Sequence record: ON529852.1
DNA length: 64,000 nucleotides
Reading direction: 5' to 3' (one strand)
Positions 3,937 through 33,045 of the stretch are shown piece by piece. Under the pieces are notes generated by a model that searched no databases, was not told the DNA's origin, and saw nothing but the letters and a program-made list of their open reading frames with translations. Positions within the stretch are counted from its first letter, which is position 1; each line of letters opens with the position of its first letter. A program made the translations under genes and the position numbers.

Positions 3937-4731
3937 TTAGTTCAGGCGCGCACCCTTGTCGCCGTTCGCCAGGGCCAGCTTGTCGTTGGCCGACATGCCG
4001 CGCATCTCGGCGGTCGTCTTGCCGAGCGGGCCGCGCTGGTCGCTACCGCCACCACCGCCAGCGCCGCCGCCGTGCGTGCCCTTGAACATGTGCGGGGCTT
4101 CGTCCTTCAGCTTCATGATCCACTCCTTGGGCGTCAGCGGCGAGCCGCCGTCAGCACCGTACAGTTGCAGATCGCCTTGGAACGCCAGCACACGGCCGTC
4201 GTCTTGGGCGCGCCACACATCGGCTGCGCGGGACAGGATGTCGCGAACCGCCGAGGGCTGGACACCGAGTTCCGGGTCGATGATGGCGTCCTTGATCGCG
4301 GTCGACACCAGCGTGCGCTTGTGAACACCTTCGATCTCGCCGGCCTTGGTCTTCCAGAGCGCGCCTTCCTTCTGGGCGGCGCGAATCTGGTCCTCCAGGA
4401 CCTTCTTCATGTCTTCAGTACGACGGATGACTTCTTCTTCGATCCGGCGGCTGTCGGTCAGTTGACCGTCTTTGACGCGCTGCGAGGTGGCCCGCAGTTC
4501 AGTCAGTTCGTTGGTGAAAGCGGTGGGGTCGTCGCCGACGATCGGCGCCAGGACCTCAACGGCCTTCTTGAGTTCGTCGCGCTCTTTGACGAGCCCGATG
4601 TTGGTTTCGCGGAACTCGTCCATCTTGTCCTGGGGGACCAGATTGATTTGGACCTTATCGCCGTCGGCCTTGGCGTAGCTGCGCAGGGCGTCCGGGATAG
4701 CGTCGAGCGAGTCGAACGTGAAAATCGGCAT
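3937..4731 (-). CDS. probable capsid scaffold protein
   Basis: 264 aa, coiled-coil, Gly-rich linker and short C-terminal helix, immediately upstream of the MCP. Confidence 0.65.
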   Translation of the reverse strand: MPIFTFDSLDAIPDALRSYAKADGDKVQINLVPQDKMDEFRETNIGLVKERDELKKAVEVLAPIVGDDPTAFTNELTELRATSQRVKDGQLTDSRRIEEEVIRRTEDMKKVLEDQIRAAQKEGALWKTKAGEIEGVHKRTLVSTAIKDAIIDPELGVQPSAVRDILSRAADVWRAQDDGRVLAFQGDLQLYGADGGSPLTPKEWIMKLKDEAPHMFKGTHGGGAGGGGGSDQRGPLGKTTAEMRGMSANDKLALANGDKGARLN

Positions 4732-4845: not shown

Positions 4846-4919
4846 GGACCCTAACAAAAAAGATCGCCATTGTCAAGATTCTCAGCAAATAACGCTTGCA
4901 ATCCTGACAATGGCGATCT
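4846..4919 (-). promoter_or_regulatory. 20-bp inverted repeat acting as terminator and containing the capsid-operon promoter
   Basis: IR 4861-4880 / 4900-4919 (1 mismatch) followed by a T-run on the minus strand; TTGACA-17-TAGGGT starts within the arm. Confidence 0.6.
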
Positions 4920-4950: not shown

Positions 4951-5520
4951 TTATTCGGCGAGACGCTGCTTCAGAGTCTTGACAGGTTTGCGGTTCTTCC
5001 GATCAATAACGAAGCCGTAGCGGGCCATGTCGTTTTTAGATTTCTCCTTGTGGCATGGGTCCTTACACAGTATCTGGACGTTCTCCGGCTCCCAGAACGA
5101 CCAATCCCCAAACGCCATGAAGAGGGGGATTACGTGATCAGCCTCCCATGCGTCGGACATATACTTCCAGACAGTACCGCACTCGGCGCATTCACCTTGG
5201 TCGCGGAAGAAGACATGCTGGCGCATGACCGCAGGATCAGATCGGAGCAAGTAGTTGCCGACGCAACGCTTCGAACACCACGACCGCCGCAGGTTGAGCG
5301 TGCCATCCTTCTTCAGAATCCGGACGCCGCACCAGCGGCAATGTCCGGGCGGCTGGCGGTTGATCTTGCTGGGGTGGGTGCGGTGGTTATAGGACACAGG
5401 CAGTTTCGAGCCGCGCGGCTTCTTGGCGCGGCGAGGCCGGCGCGAGGATGAGCGGCGGCGGCTAACAGTACGGGACGGCGTCTTCGGAGGAGAGGCGCGC
5501 CGCGCGGGGCGGCGGGCCAT
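4951..5520 (-). CDS. HNH endonuclease
   Basis: CRWCG and WCSKRC Zn motifs; ECAECG...EADHVIPL...N..ILCKDPCH HNH core; TGATG coupling to the upstream gene. Confidence 0.88.
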   Translation of the reverse strand: MARRPARRASPPKTPSRTVSRRRSSSRRPRRAKKPRGSKLPVSYNHRTHPSKINRQPPGHCRWCGVRILKKDGTLNLRRSWCSKRCVGNYLLRSDPAVMRQHVFFRDQGECAECGTVWKYMSDAWEADHVIPLFMAFGDWSFWEPENVQILCKDPCHKEKSKNDMARYGFVIDRKNRKPVKTLKQRLAE

Positions 5521-7044: not shown

Positions 7045-7459
7045 GGCGGTGCTCTTCTTCAACTTCAGCTTCTTGCTCAGCCTTTGGGCCGAGGGTGGCG
7101 CGGACCTGTTCGATCCAGGCGCGGTTATCTTCCGCCGTCGCGGCGCGCGGCGGCAGGTGAGGACGAAAGCCGACGACTTCATGGGAGCCAGGGGCGTAGA
7201 CGATCTCGACCGCCTCCGCGTGAGCGATGTCGCTCTCCAGTTCCTCGGCCGGGCCGGCGATCTCAAGAATCGCCAGCGCCAGCCTGCGCGCCAGGCGACG
7301 GTCGAACAGCATCGTGTTCTGCCCGGTCACGATCTCCACACAGCGACCGTCGGGGTTGCCGATCGTGCGGAAGACGTAGTGGAACCGGGGGTCCATCGCT
7401 TCGGTGCAGCGCCAGACCATGAGACCGGCCTGGATGGTCACGCTGAAGTCGTCGACCAA
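7034..7459 (-). CDS. hypothetical protein
   Basis: 141-aa ORF with TTG start and typical codon bias. Confidence 0.65.
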   Translation of the reverse strand: MVDDFSVTIQAGLMVWRCTEAMDPRFHYVFRTIGNPDGRCVEIVTGQNTMLFDRRLARRLALAILEIAGPAEELESDIAHAEAVEIVYAPGSHEVVGFRPHLPPRAATAEDNRAWIEQVRATLGPKAEQEAEVEEEHRHVG

Positions 7460-7464
7460 CGTCG

Positions 7465-7605
7465 TCAGCGCCGCGAGATCGGCTGCAAGGCGGTGGTGTT
7501 CATCAAGGCGCTGCGCAGCGTCTTGTAGACCGGGACTTCGTAGACCTTCGGCGGAGCGCCGGTGCTGAAGTCATCGACGTAGGTGTATTGGATGGGGTCG
7601 GTCAT
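7465..7605 (-). CDS. hypothetical protein, 46 aa
   Basis: GAGA RBS plus ATG; fills the gap. Confidence 0.55.
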   Translation of the reverse strand: MTDPIQYTYVDDFSTGAPPKVYEVPVYKTLRSALMNTTALQPISRR

Positions 7606-24552: not shown

Positions 24553-24778
24553 GTAGGGATGTGTCGGTCAAAAAGACCGGGAGGGGCGTTGTCCGAACGA
24601 CGAACCGCGACCCTCCCGTAGGGTCAGACGAAAATGTCGGGGCCGAGCGGCTCCGAACGCCGTCATACCTGCCATGAAACGGCATCTGTGTCAAGATTTA
24701 CGGCAATCAGCGCCTCCGATCGAGTCATCAATCGCCGTGTTAACCCTCTTTTGCCATTGACGCTGACAGAATCATGGC

Positions 24779-24985
24779 TAAGGTCAAGGTTTCCAACGAG
24801 GCCTGCGGGCTTCCTGATAACCCGAACGGAGGAGGTCGCCATGAAGTGAGAGACACACCGCCCTGGGGGAGCCAGGGGTCGGCCGGCGCGAAACCTTACC
24901 CAGAGGCGCGACCGGTCTTCAGCAGCGCACTCTTGACCATATTGCGTGAAGGCCCCGCCGAATGATCGACGGGGCCTTTCTTCTG
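24779..24985 (+). ncRNA. candidate ~200-nt structured RNA with an internal ATG-AAG-TGA minigene
   Basis: CtrA-like promoter at 24740-24772; end-pairing GGTCAAG (24782-88) / CTTGACC (24932-38); internal stems; terminator at 24949-24985. Confidence 0.5.
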
Positions 24986-24993
24986 TTGCGCCT

Positions 24994-25701
24994 CTACGGC
25001 TGGGGAGCCTTCCATTGCAGGGCCGCGCACAACGGCGTCTCAATGAGGTTGCGCGCGCCGGCCGATCTCGGCCCGCCCGTGTTGAAGATGGCGACCACCT
25101 CACCCGCGCCGTTGACGATCGGGCCGCCCGACATGCCGGGATGGGCCTCGCCGCCGAGGAGAGCCTGGTGATGGGCGATCTCTCCCGTCTTCAGGCGCTG
25201 ATCGGCATAGTCGCCGGCGAAGGTCAGGCGCTGAACAGCGAAGTCGACGCCGTGGGCGTATCCGAACCCCAGATATTCGACGCCGGCGCGCAGGCCGTCG
25301 CAGTTCACCGGCGTGACCGGCGTGTCGCCCAGATCAGCGGTCAGGACCGCCGTGTCCAGGCGGCGATCGATGTAGGAGACGGCGACCAGGCGATCCTTGA
25401 AAAGGCAGGCGGCGTTCTTGTCGACGACGTGGGCGGCGGTGAGGATGCGATTGCGGGCGATGATCGTGCCGGTGCCCGTGTAGATGCGCGACGCAGCCTT
25501 CTGTTCCTGCGTCATGGCGTCCATGTCGGCGAGCCCCAGCCCGTCCGGCAGGCGCAGGCAGGTGATGAGGCCGACCGTGTTCAGGTTGAGAAAGTATCGG
25601 TCCTGGGAGGACCCTGTCAGGCCCAGGGGAGACGCCGACGGCGTCAGAGACGACGCAAAGAGGACGACGGCCGTGAACAGCACGGCGAGCGATCGGCGCA
25701 T
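24994..25701 (-). CDS. trypsin-like (S1) serine protease with signal peptide
   Basis: LTAAHV, LDTAVL and GMSGGP catalytic motifs; N-terminal MRRSLAVLFTAVVLFASS. Confidence 0.88.
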   Translation of the reverse strand: MRRSLAVLFTAVVLFASSLTPSASPLGLTGSSQDRYFLNLNTVGLITCLRLPDGLGLADMDAMTQEQKAASRIYTGTGTIIARNRILTAAHVVDKNAACLFKDRLVAVSYIDRRLDTAVLTADLGDTPVTPVNCDGLRAGVEYLGFGYAHGVDFAVQRLTFAGDYADQRLKTGEIAHHQALLGGEAHPGMSGGPIVNGAGEVVAIFNTGGPRSAGARNLIETPLCAALQWKAPQP

Positions 25702-26199
25702 GGCGATGACCAATGAGGGAGTGTCAGAAATACTGACACACCTGCCTGCGAAATGCAACGCTTACGCAACGCCGGCGCGAAAATAGCGAGAACCTTGCGG
25801 GGGCGAAGCGATCCTGCGCCAAATGGTCCCCGGAGGGCCGCGCGGCGGACGAAATGTGTCGCCTCTTGGGCAGGTTTCGCGGGGATCGCACCTGGAGTCT
25901 CCCCGAAGCGGATTCGCTAAATTTTGATTCAACAAAATTTCAGAAATTCGATGTTCGGATTCGATTCCGATTTCCGGAAAACACGCCGGCCGTTTTGATC
26001 AAGACCCCCTACCCGCCCCCCTCCCTGGCGGCTGCGCCAGGTTCGGAAGGGAATGCTCAAATCTCAATCCATCCGCCTGGCGCCCCGGCGAAAATCGGTC
26101 GAGGGAGGGGGGCCTTGGGTCCCTGACCGTCCCGTTTTGAAACAGGGGGGCCATGGGGGGTCCGGCCCCCATGGGAGGGGGCCGGGGGCGGCGGGGCGG

Positions 26200-32925: not shown

Positions 32926-33045
32926 CTAGGCTCCGCGTCCCTTGCGGGAGTAGGAGCCTTTGCCCTTGCGGGCCTTGACCACGCGGACCCGGTAAGCCGG
33001 GGTGGCGAGGGCGGCGGCGGCGGGGTTGCGTTTCGGGGCGGCCAT
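32926..33045 (-). CDS. arfA: ArfA-like alternative ribosome-rescue factor, 39 aa
   Basis: MAAPKRNPAAAALATPAYRVRVVKARKGKGSYSRKGRGA carries the L..P.(F/Y)R.RV.K.+KGKGSY.RK signature; own CtrA promoter and RBS. Confidence 0.8.
   Translation of the reverse strand: MAAPKRNPAAAALATPAYRVRVVKARKGKGSYSRKGRGA

Follow-up and report, generated by a model that had tools for sequence, protein, structure and literature searches.

A probable minigene-bearing small RNA family upstream of the portal gene of Brevundimonas phage Kabachok and related phages

The DNA analyzed herein is a 64,000-nucleotide (nt) stretch of sequence record ON529852.1, referred to below as the window. It comes from Brevundimonas phage vB_BpoS-Kabachok, a jumbo phage with a genome of 356 kb that belongs to the Dolichocephalovirinae (phiCbK-like prolate siphophages). 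The portal gene and a trypsin-like peptidase gene of this phage are separated by a gap of 441 bp (24553-24993), which is 100% identical to the Kabachok record and without annotation there. Comparison with related phages indicates, with a probability of roughly 0.85, that the gap holds a member of a real, conserved RNA family carrying a minigene, an open reading frame (ORF) of one to four sense codons. This would be a previously undescribed small-RNA family of the Dolichocephalovirinae, defined by a selected minigene with an optimal ribosome-binding site (RBS) and by an ACCCAG loop. A + strand RNA of about 195 nt, roughly 24790-24987, is the best explanation of the signals in the gap.

The + strand unit and its minigene

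The minus strand carries nearly all genes of the window, and the unit on the + strand opposes this prevailing transcription. A preceding sequence-only reading had placed a + strand unit between the portal and the protease genes. Direct reading of the letters located the unit there, with every quoted string at its coordinates, including a Met-Lys-stop minigene with an RBS, two internal hairpins and a terminator made of a G+C-rich hairpin with a U-rich tail. A 5' hairpin and an ACCCAG loop motif were found in addition. The features are listed as follows.

24757-24762, + strand: -35 box TTGACG with a T-rich tract upstream; TTGAC is invariant in all 15 units aligned on it
24777-24784, + strand: -10-like box GCTAAGGT, 14 nt past the -35 hexamer, overlapping the ATG of a 63-amino-acid ORF
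24798-24813, + strand: 5' hairpin GAGGCC-UGCG-GGCUUC; all alignment cells pair in the seven Brevundimonas phages, with one pair changed on both sides
24814-24827, + strand: A/C-rich linker, predicted to be unpaired when the 5' segment is folded alone
24828-24835, + strand: Shine-Dalgarno (SD) sequence GGAGGAGG; GGAG(G/A)-N5-ATG is found in all 18 isolates
24841-24849, + strand: minigene ATG AAG TGA, Met-Lys-stop (ATG 24841-43, AAG 24844-46, TGA 24847-49), preceded by the spacer TCGCC
24858-24882, + strand: hairpin 2 with the loop GGGAG; Gurke and Kikimora keep the stem with another loop, and 32 of 33 nt are the same as in Marchewka
24883-24915, + strand: hairpin 3, with a 16-nt loop that contains ACCCAG (24898-24903)
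24916-24947, + strand: variable 3' linker, 28 of 32 nt the same as in Marchewka, partly missing in Gurke and Kikimora
24948-24987, + strand: intrinsic terminator with a 14-pair stem and a U-rich tail; 95.8% of cells pair in the seven-phage alignment
22570-24552, minus strand: portal gene (PHROG portal, E 3e-109)
24994-25758, minus strand: trypsin-like peptidase gene, bounding the gap on the other side

A convergent gene follows the terminator in Kabachok, and no protein-coding cistron lies downstream on the predicted transcript in the window. The syntenic site upstream of the portal gene was surveyed in isolates, together with a portal-guided search of metagenomes. The minigene unit was found at this site in 18 isolates from at least five genera and in two metagenomic relatives (loci L109 and L110). 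It is present in seven Brevundimonas phages (Kabachok, Papperlapapp, Domovoi, Marchewka, Bambus, Gurke and Kikimora) and also in Colossus, CcrPW, phiCbK, Magneto, Swift, Ccr5, Karma, Rogue, BL57, RB23, CcrSC and CcrBL9. Papperlapapp, Domovoi, Marchewka and Bambus are 88-93% identical to Kabachok over the gap. Gurke and Kikimora are more distant, with about 74% DNA identity in the portal region; the unit is at the same place and Met-Lys-stop is retained despite the diverged surroundings. The Caulobacter phages likewise have the unit in the portal-upstream gap, on the opposite strand to the portal gene, except that it lies a few genes further away in CcrPW. Its parts in these phages are, in order, a TTGAC promoter, a 5' hairpin, an A/C-rich linker, GGAG(G/A), N5, ATG, a short ORF, hairpins and a terminator. 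Two hypothetical proteins, CcrRogue_gp045 (L100 414-608) and BL57_044c (L101 400-528), extend over the promoter and the 5' portion of the unit; these annotations are probably spurious.

Met-Lys-stop occurs in 10 of the 18 isolates. In Marchewka and Bambus the AAG codon is deleted as exactly 3 nt, leaving the start-stop ATG-TGA. The ORFs of the other lineages are as follows.

Met-Lys-TAG: RB23, Rogue and BL57
Met-Lys-TGA: CcrSC and CcrBL9
Met-Leu-Lys-TAA: phiCbK, Magneto, Swift, Ccr5 and Karma
Met-Arg-Ala-TAG: Colossus and CcrPW
(Met)-Met-Lys-TAG: metagenomic locus L110
(Met)-Met-His-Thr-TAA: metagenomic locus L109

An ORF of one to four sense codons (the start plus zero to three more) is thus kept in every lineage. 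Its length changes exclusively by multiples of 3 nt, the Met-Leu-Lys and Met-Arg-Ala forms being 3 nt longer, and TGA, TAG and TAA all serve as the stop. The spacer between the SD and the ATG is fixed at 5 nt across the 18 isolates, while its sequence varies. Stacking the units on the SD brings GGAG(G/A), the spacer length and the start codon into register, and in most cases AAG-stop as well; the flanks do not align. The fixed spacer length, the turnover of stops, the in-frame-only length changes and an ORF that never exceeds four codons point to selection on ribosome binding and on an immediate in-frame stop, apparently not on the peptide. The reading frame appears to be under selection and is thus very probably translated; the peptide itself, as judged from these alignments, is irrelevant. 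A minigene lost in the relatives would have refuted the sequence-only reading; it is conserved in them.

The number of such sites in the window carries little weight by comparison. One SD-N5-ATG-short-ORF was observed per 64 kb against 0.16 expected, and at least one was found in 15% of simulated sequences, so the single occurrence is not significant by itself; it becomes significant through its retention across the phage subfamily. A stop within at most three further sense codons follows 8.9% of random ATGs in the G+C-rich Kabachok genome. When the early-stop condition was dropped, 21 SD-N5-ATG sites were counted against 2.7 expected. Since nearly all of them precede ORFs of 39-248 codons, the 5-nt spacing is the spacing this phage uses for real genes.

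The limits of the family were traced by further searches. The portal-guided metagenome search gave nine loci, two of which hold the unit (L109 and L110). Locus L111 has a degenerate form, GGAG-N3-GTG-CCT-TCC-TGA; the unit was not found at the gap of L108 or in the distant AT-rich L112-L114, nor upstream of the portal gene of the outgroup Erythrobacter phage L02. With a profile of the Brevundimonas units, those of the Caulobacter phages are detected only marginally (E 0.003 to 6). Scanning viral contigs for AACCCG-N6-GGAGG-N4-CATG gave 86 matches, essentially all of them ordinary gene starts, and the two-module pattern of minigene plus ACCCAG retrieved Rogue as the sole true member from the viral contigs. 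The identical 45-kb viral contigs L048 and L049 have GGAGG-N5-ATG-TGA in a gene leader (L048 8415-8427), at about the chance rate, and the AT-rich jumbo-phage contigs L135 and L144 have GGAGA-N5-ATG-AAG-TGA beside a tRNA gene; both matches are probably due to chance. The strict three-module pattern gave four matches among 185,579 bacterial and archaeal genomes, in unrelated taxa and none in Caulobacterales; a host copy was not detected at this stringency.

Promoter, folding and sequence constraint of the predicted RNA

The transcript start is predicted near 24790 (about 24788-24792), downstream of the two promoter boxes. The T-tract upstream of the -35 box recurs among the units of the relatives, and the -10 position is CTAG, CTAA or TTAAA in these. 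The TTGAC/GCTAAGGT promoter resembles the consensus of the Caulobacter housekeeping sigma factor. A CtrA-like promoter (TTAA-N7-TTGC...CAGAAT) had been proposed from the sequence alone. Its letters are present, but TTAA is missing in Gurke and Kikimora and the site is not TTAA-N7-TTAA; neither a conserved TTAA-N7-TTAA nor TTAACCAT, a CtrA half-site, was found at the promoter. The conserved elements are instead TTGACG and GCTAAGGT at the positions listed above.

A related promoter layout was observed elsewhere in the window. At least about a dozen minus-strand genes between 33 and 62 kb have a -10 type GCTAGGGT or GCTAGAAC about 20 nt ahead of GGAGAC-N4-ATG, with an A/C-rich leader of about 15 nt between the -10-like box and GGAGAC-N4-ATG. 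These genes form what seems to be a very uniform class with a short 5' untranslated region, probably early genes read by the host polymerase. The promoter of the minigene RNA looks like that of this short-leader class. A simple promoter and terminator scanner made no call here; it missed the large-looped terminator because of an internal mismatch. Public RNA runs of phiCbK infection are stored as 20-28-kb contigs with flat depth, in which transcript ends are not readable.

The folding of the RNA was compared in an alignment of the seven Brevundimonas phages. Over the four hairpins, 94.5% of cells pair, against 28-60% in shifted controls, and four pairs are changed on both sides, two of them in the terminator stem (CG to UA). 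This result is supportive rather than decisive, because so few independent lineages are available. The lineages as a whole have diverged too far to be aligned reliably as one set. The 5' and 3' segments were also folded separately for each lineage, and the same order of modules was obtained in most. Most lineages have a predicted 5' hairpin of differing sequence, weak or absent in L109, followed by a linker predicted to be unpaired; A/C-rich linkers of about 12-25 nt precede the SD in every lineage. The first 3' hairpin begins about 6-12 nt past the stop codon where the prediction is clean; one hairpin is large-looped, and the terminator follows. The boxes of the predicted promoter are conserved, as is the terminator, the latter with covariation. 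The comparison supports a non-coding, independently bounded unit on the + strand, as the sequence-only reading had supposed, and not the 63-amino-acid ORF.

A closing helix GGTCAAG/CTTGACC had also been proposed. The two strings exist at 24782-88 and 24932-38, but their pairing is not supported by the relatives: Papperlapapp differs in the 3' arm by a substitution and a 1-nt deletion, Domovoi by a substitution, and Gurke and Kikimora have no counterpart. The 5' arm overlaps the -10 box and hence is probably upstream of the transcript. Three further candidates were set aside. A long-range pairing of the 5' end with the loop of hairpin 3 was left out of the model; it is perfect in Kabachok, but a C-C mismatch weakens it in Marchewka. 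Sequestration of the SD in a structural switch, hairpin 1 supplying the anti-SD with its 3' arm, is possible in the Brevundimonas group and not conserved elsewhere. The likeness of GAUAACCCGAA to the anticodon arm of initiator tRNA is missing from other lineages and was treated as a coincidence.

The core of the RNA (24791-24915) is identical between Kabachok and Marchewka at 119 of 126 positions (94%), and the codon deletion accounts for three of the seven differences. By comparison, identity is 76% at the four-fold sites of the adjacent portal gene and 74% in the promoter interval 24757-24790. The RNA core is thus, on this comparison, under strong purifying selection. Identity this far above that of four-fold sites indicates that the 3' domain is constrained in sequence and not in shape alone.

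ACCCAG is the most widely shared hexamer, present in 8 of 10 lineages and ahead even of ATGAAG. In 500 shuffles the maximum was seven lineages and the 95th percentile six. The motif lies in the 16-nt loop of hairpin 3 in Kabachok, in the terminator loop of Colossus, L109 and L110, and in the loop of the first 3' hairpin of phiCbK and Rogue.

Known families were searched as well. No Rfam family matched at the gathering threshold in the window or in 10 homologous loci. At permissive thresholds the best sub-threshold matches reached at most 21 bits (E 0.11 to 8.1) and rested mainly on the terminator. ARAGORN gave no tRNA or transfer-messenger RNA, and the gap ORFs of 63, 71 and 146 amino acids had no Pfam or PHROG matches. 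No publication describing this RNA was found, and the phiCbK genome paper reports no functional RNAs other than tRNAs.

Possible roles of the RNA

In the model favored here, the 5' hairpin and the occupied RBS work in cis: they would protect or shape the RNA, and its ACCCAG loop would serve as the effector. This model is put forward tentatively, at somewhat below even odds, and is ranked ahead of the model of a translation decoy. A host-type TTGAC/GCTA promoter would drive a stand-alone small RNA, as in the short-leader genes of the window, and the RNA would end at its own terminator; it is probably expressed early. The 5' module, consisting of the hairpin, the A/C-rich linker, the strong SD, the AUG and the immediate stop, would load a ribosome, which would terminate after one to four codons, a few nt ahead of the structured 3' domain. 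The hairpin and the ribosome-occupied RBS may shield the RNA from decay. The 3' domain would stay folded and free because the ORF ends just ahead of it, and the ACCCAG loop could then contact an RNA or protein partner. The effector is placed in the 3' domain since the loop motif is conserved and the sequence of this domain is constrained.

A cis role is preferred because a 5' hairpin with a bound ribosome is a documented stabilizer and two-codon mini-ORFs have been reported to act in cis. Lodato et al. 2012, to go by its title, reportedly describes the RBS of a mini-ORF that shields an mRNA from RNase E, and Hambraeus et al. 2002 is said, again by title, to deal with the aprE leader. The predicted distance from the 5' end to the SD is about 40 nt, with the 5' hairpin between them. 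A two-codon mini-ORF raises expression of a downstream cistron in cis, probably via mRNA protection (PMC8708949). An RBS near the 5' end or a 5' hairpin can stabilize downstream RNA (review PMC3997798), and translation of a very short ORF, or ribosome binding alone close to the 5' end, has been reported to protect or activate the RNA downstream (PMC8708949, PMC3997798).

Several observations weigh against this interpretation. The transcript, its ends and its translation are predictions. By thermodynamic folding, the probability that the SD is unpaired ranges from 0.05 to 0.54 across lineages, which gives it no special accessibility; in the minimum-free-energy fold of the whole RNA it pairs with 24808-24815, and most of the linker (24817-24830) is the unpaired loop of that helix. 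With about 10 diverged lineages in all, the covariation is thin. ACCCAG is missing from CcrSC and, in RB23, stands immediately ahead of the SD instead of in a 3' loop. A search of the window for the extended complement of the ACCCAG loop gave nothing beyond chance and no target. A pure stabilizer role also leaves the retention of the AAG second codon in most lineages poorly explained.

The unit resembles several known systems in part. The bar minigene of phage lambda is AUG-AUA-stop within a long early transcript. It is known to be toxic only when Pth is limiting, through accumulation of peptidyl-tRNA, and to act in trans as a decoy when over-expressed. The phage-borne bar and synthetic two-codon minigenes share with the unit the layout of SD, AUG, one sense codon and stop, which reads GGAGGAGG-N5-ATG-AAG-TGA at 24828-24849. 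There is no sequence relationship to bar, however; the minigene here has a predicted promoter and terminator to itself, is accompanied by structured domains and is conserved in several genera of phages, and its sense codon varies or is missing. Cis-acting mini-ORFs (axe-txe mg2, the minigene of the enterohaemorrhagic Escherichia coli LEE1 leader, and the mini-ORF in a type III secretion system mRNA reported by Lodato et al. 2012) likewise place a tiny ORF near the 5' end. Stabilizers of the aprE type reportedly combine a 5' hairpin with a strong RBS that follows it. A short ORF and a functional-looking RBS near the predicted RNA 5' end are found here as well. The difference is that these elements serve a downstream coding cistron, which is not found on the same transcript in the window; a structured non-coding 3' domain and a terminator follow instead. 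Start codons directly before a stop bind ribosomes without a product in yecJ and hslR (Meydan et al., bioRxiv 10.1101/520783), and the Marchewka and Bambus variants are exactly of this kind. The Kabachok unit has one sense codon after the ATG, ATG-TGA being confined to Marchewka and Bambus, and it is a stand-alone RNA, whereas the E. coli elements occur within genes, where tuning of the host ORF has been proposed for them. Base-pairing small RNAs with an intrinsic terminator share the promoter, the 5' hairpin, the conserved loop motif and the Rho-independent terminator, all predicted here, but a conserved start site at optimal spacing, opening an ORF of one to four codons, is not normally part of them.

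A link of the unit to translation is plausible because the phage encodes an ArfA homologue and a PTH2-type hydrolase. The ArfA-like gene noted in the sequence-only reading was borne out as a 39-amino-acid ORF on the minus strand (32926-33045; Pfam E 6.3e-10, 38.8 bits against a cut-off of 25.5). This ORF is annotated as an alternative ribosome-rescue factor and has the short-leader promoter and RBS layout of its neighbours. A tblastn search of phages with its 39 amino acids gave no matches, not even itself. The PTH2-family peptidyl-tRNA hydrolase gene lies outside the window (L153:22093-22518, equal to ON529852.1 72093-72518; Pfam E 8.8e-9, 36 bits, cut-off 23). Its neighbourhood includes genes annotated as tRNA-His guanylyltransferase and CCA-adding enzyme. 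PTH2 homologues were found in all seven Brevundimonas jumbo phages, in Bertelyvirus, in Colossusvirus and in many other large alphaproteobacterial phages.

The strongest competitor of the cis model, though judged unlikely, is a minigene RNA that acts in trans as a translation decoy. An abundant RNA would hold ribosomes, or release di- or tripeptidyl-tRNA, by repeated initiation and termination, and the phage would tolerate the perturbed host translation through its own tRNAs, its PTH2 hydrolase and ArfA. The strong SD, the exact 5-nt spacing and the mostly two-codon ORF make the start site look built for maximal loading. Two-codon minigene ORFs have been linked to ribosome recycling and peptidyl-tRNA drop-off, and those with a strong SD are reported to recycle ribosomes and release peptidyl-tRNA (PMC8708949). 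In the literature summarized there, two-codon minigenes are the most toxic and a strong SD allows reinitiation without ribosome dissociation, but this toxicity is seen on over-expression (PMC8708949). The phage encodes both protein factors, 24 tRNAs were reported in the paper on the isolates, and Bertelyvirus and Colossusvirus members that carry the RNA have PTH2 homologues. The association is loose, however: PTH2 was not detected in the phiCbK-type, Rogue-type and BL57 phages, all of them carriers of the RNA, and it is common in other large alphaproteobacterial phages, of which the one examined, Erythrobacter phage L02, lacks such a unit ahead of its portal gene. The last sense codon varies (Lys, Ala, Thr or none), which argues against a single tRNA as the target, and the start-stop of Marchewka and Bambus cannot give peptidyl-tRNA beyond fMet-tRNA. 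Nor does the decoy model account for the ACCCAG loop or for how strongly hairpins 2 and 3 are constrained. The earlier suggestion of a tRNA-Lys decoy or small RNA survives in part: the comparison supports a stand-alone small-RNA unit and does not support specificity for tRNA-Lys, given ATG-TGA in Marchewka and Bambus, Met-Arg-Ala in Colossus and CcrPW and a final Thr in L109. A fuller version, slightly less likely again, is a dedicated trans-acting minigene RNA that traps or recycles ribosomes, its ACCCAG loop perhaps a second contact with the ribosome or a translation factor, as part of a takeover kit with ArfA, the PTH2 hydrolase, the tRNA-maturation enzymes and the tRNAs.

Regulation of a neighbouring gene was considered as well, and is improbable. 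The unit would be a cis-regulatory leader or attenuator of the transglutaminase-like cysteine peptidase gene in the Caulobacter phages, with mini-ORF occupancy setting terminator read-through, and the Brevundimonas copies would be relics. The next gene is indeed co-oriented in phiCbK, Rogue, RB23, CcrSC, Colossus, CcrPW and L110, starting 39-65 nt past the terminator or after two further units (Colossus and CcrPW), and the first 3' hairpin, about 6-12 nt past the stop, lies at the edge of the footprint of a terminating ribosome. A convergent gene nevertheless follows the unit in all seven Brevundimonas phages, and the core there is strongly conserved; attenuation thus cannot be the shared function. 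The leader ORF has zero to three variable codons after the start and no run of regulatory codons, no conserved antiterminator or alternative helix was found, no downstream gene exists in the window, and in phiCbK-type phages a separate promoter-like palindrome lies past the terminator, ahead of the peptidase gene. Still less probable is that the region has no RNA function and consists of back-to-back promoters with an insulating terminator, the minigene being a decaying gene start. The promoter and RBS are of the type seen at many genes of the window, so a truncated gene start is conceivable, and the portal promoter is about 60 bp away on the opposite strand. Decay would strike the SD, the spacing and the ATG first, yet these are the best-conserved positions amid diverged flanks; ORF indels are solely multiples of three, and the core is 94% identical against 76% at neutral-like sites. 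A small protein gene, either the 63-amino-acid ORF (24774-24965) or a read-through or frameshift product at the minigene stop, is hardly credible. That ORF is present in Kabachok, and a GTG overlapping AAG-TGA is in frame with it. With the transcript start predicted near 24790, its ATG falls in the -10 box; Marchewka and Bambus have other letters in place of this ATG, and the frame is interrupted by 1-nt indels in Papperlapapp and Domovoi. Downstream of the minigene stop, indels of 2, 3, 1 and 16 nt distinguish the Gurke group from the Kabachok group, other lineages have TAG or TAA followed by unrelated sequence, and there are no Pfam or PHROG matches. Extension of the minigene by read-through, selenocysteine or frameshift was rejected in view of these indels and of the stop-codon variation. 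The 63-amino-acid frame, whose conservation would have spoken against the sequence-only reading, is not conserved, and as a gene it appears already refuted by the comparative data.

The portal leader, additional units and significance

Further observations were made on the surroundings of the unit. The portal leader (24568-24696, minus strand) has a promoter-like TCTTGACA from 24696 to 24689 and a long hairpin from 24617 to 24579, followed by GUCUUUUUGAC. The hairpin and GUCUUUUUGAC lie only about 15 nt ahead of the portal ATG and look like a terminator inside a late-gene leader. A comparable hairpin and U-tract directly ahead of the portal start occur in Colossus, RB23, CcrSC, L110 and the outgroup Erythrobacter phage L02; loci L095, L097, L102, L110 and L154 are also covered by this observation. 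Such a terminator, if true, would imply antitermination control. The portal promoters of the Caulobacter phages read TCTTGACA-N9-GTTAACCATG, and Kabachok has GTTTCATGGCA instead. A palindrome TGTCATGGTTAATGACA, related to these promoters, precedes the transglutaminase-like peptidase gene. The positions of the portal promoters and the palindrome are L095 about 4855-4885, L096 about 4880-4905 and 5185-5205, and L097 about 4655-4685. The annotated start of the phiCbK portal (CbK_gp042, JX100813, L096:4720-4788) is 23 codons short; an upstream ATG yields MAGQTPNSLNISR..., matching the Kabachok N-terminus MAGTAPNSTNISR....

Colossus and CcrPW have two more units, running from a TTGAC promoter to a terminator without a minigene, after the minigene RNA (L095 5238-5355 and 5357-5470; L094 about 7255-7375 and 7376-7490). 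These phages may have an array of three small RNAs.

Minigenes date back to the work on lambda bar. To our knowledge, they have been seen mainly as curiosities that are toxic on over-expression or with defective Pth, and their selective retention has been an open question. The comparative record indicates selection on a frame of one to four codons in a stand-alone RNA. The basis is the invariant SD spacing, the in-frame-only indels, the turnover of stops and a core whose rate of change is about a quarter of that at synonymous sites. This pattern spans a whole jumbo-phage subfamily, including phiCbK, the standard phage of the Caulobacter model system, and the analysis gives about 20 published genomes an RNA gene that is missing from their annotation. 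A direct test is possible in the Caulobacter system, where genetics, ribosome profiling (Ribo-seq) and infection RNA-seq are available. If the trans-acting, ribosome-trapping reading were true, this RNA would provide the first demonstrated physiological role of a minigene.

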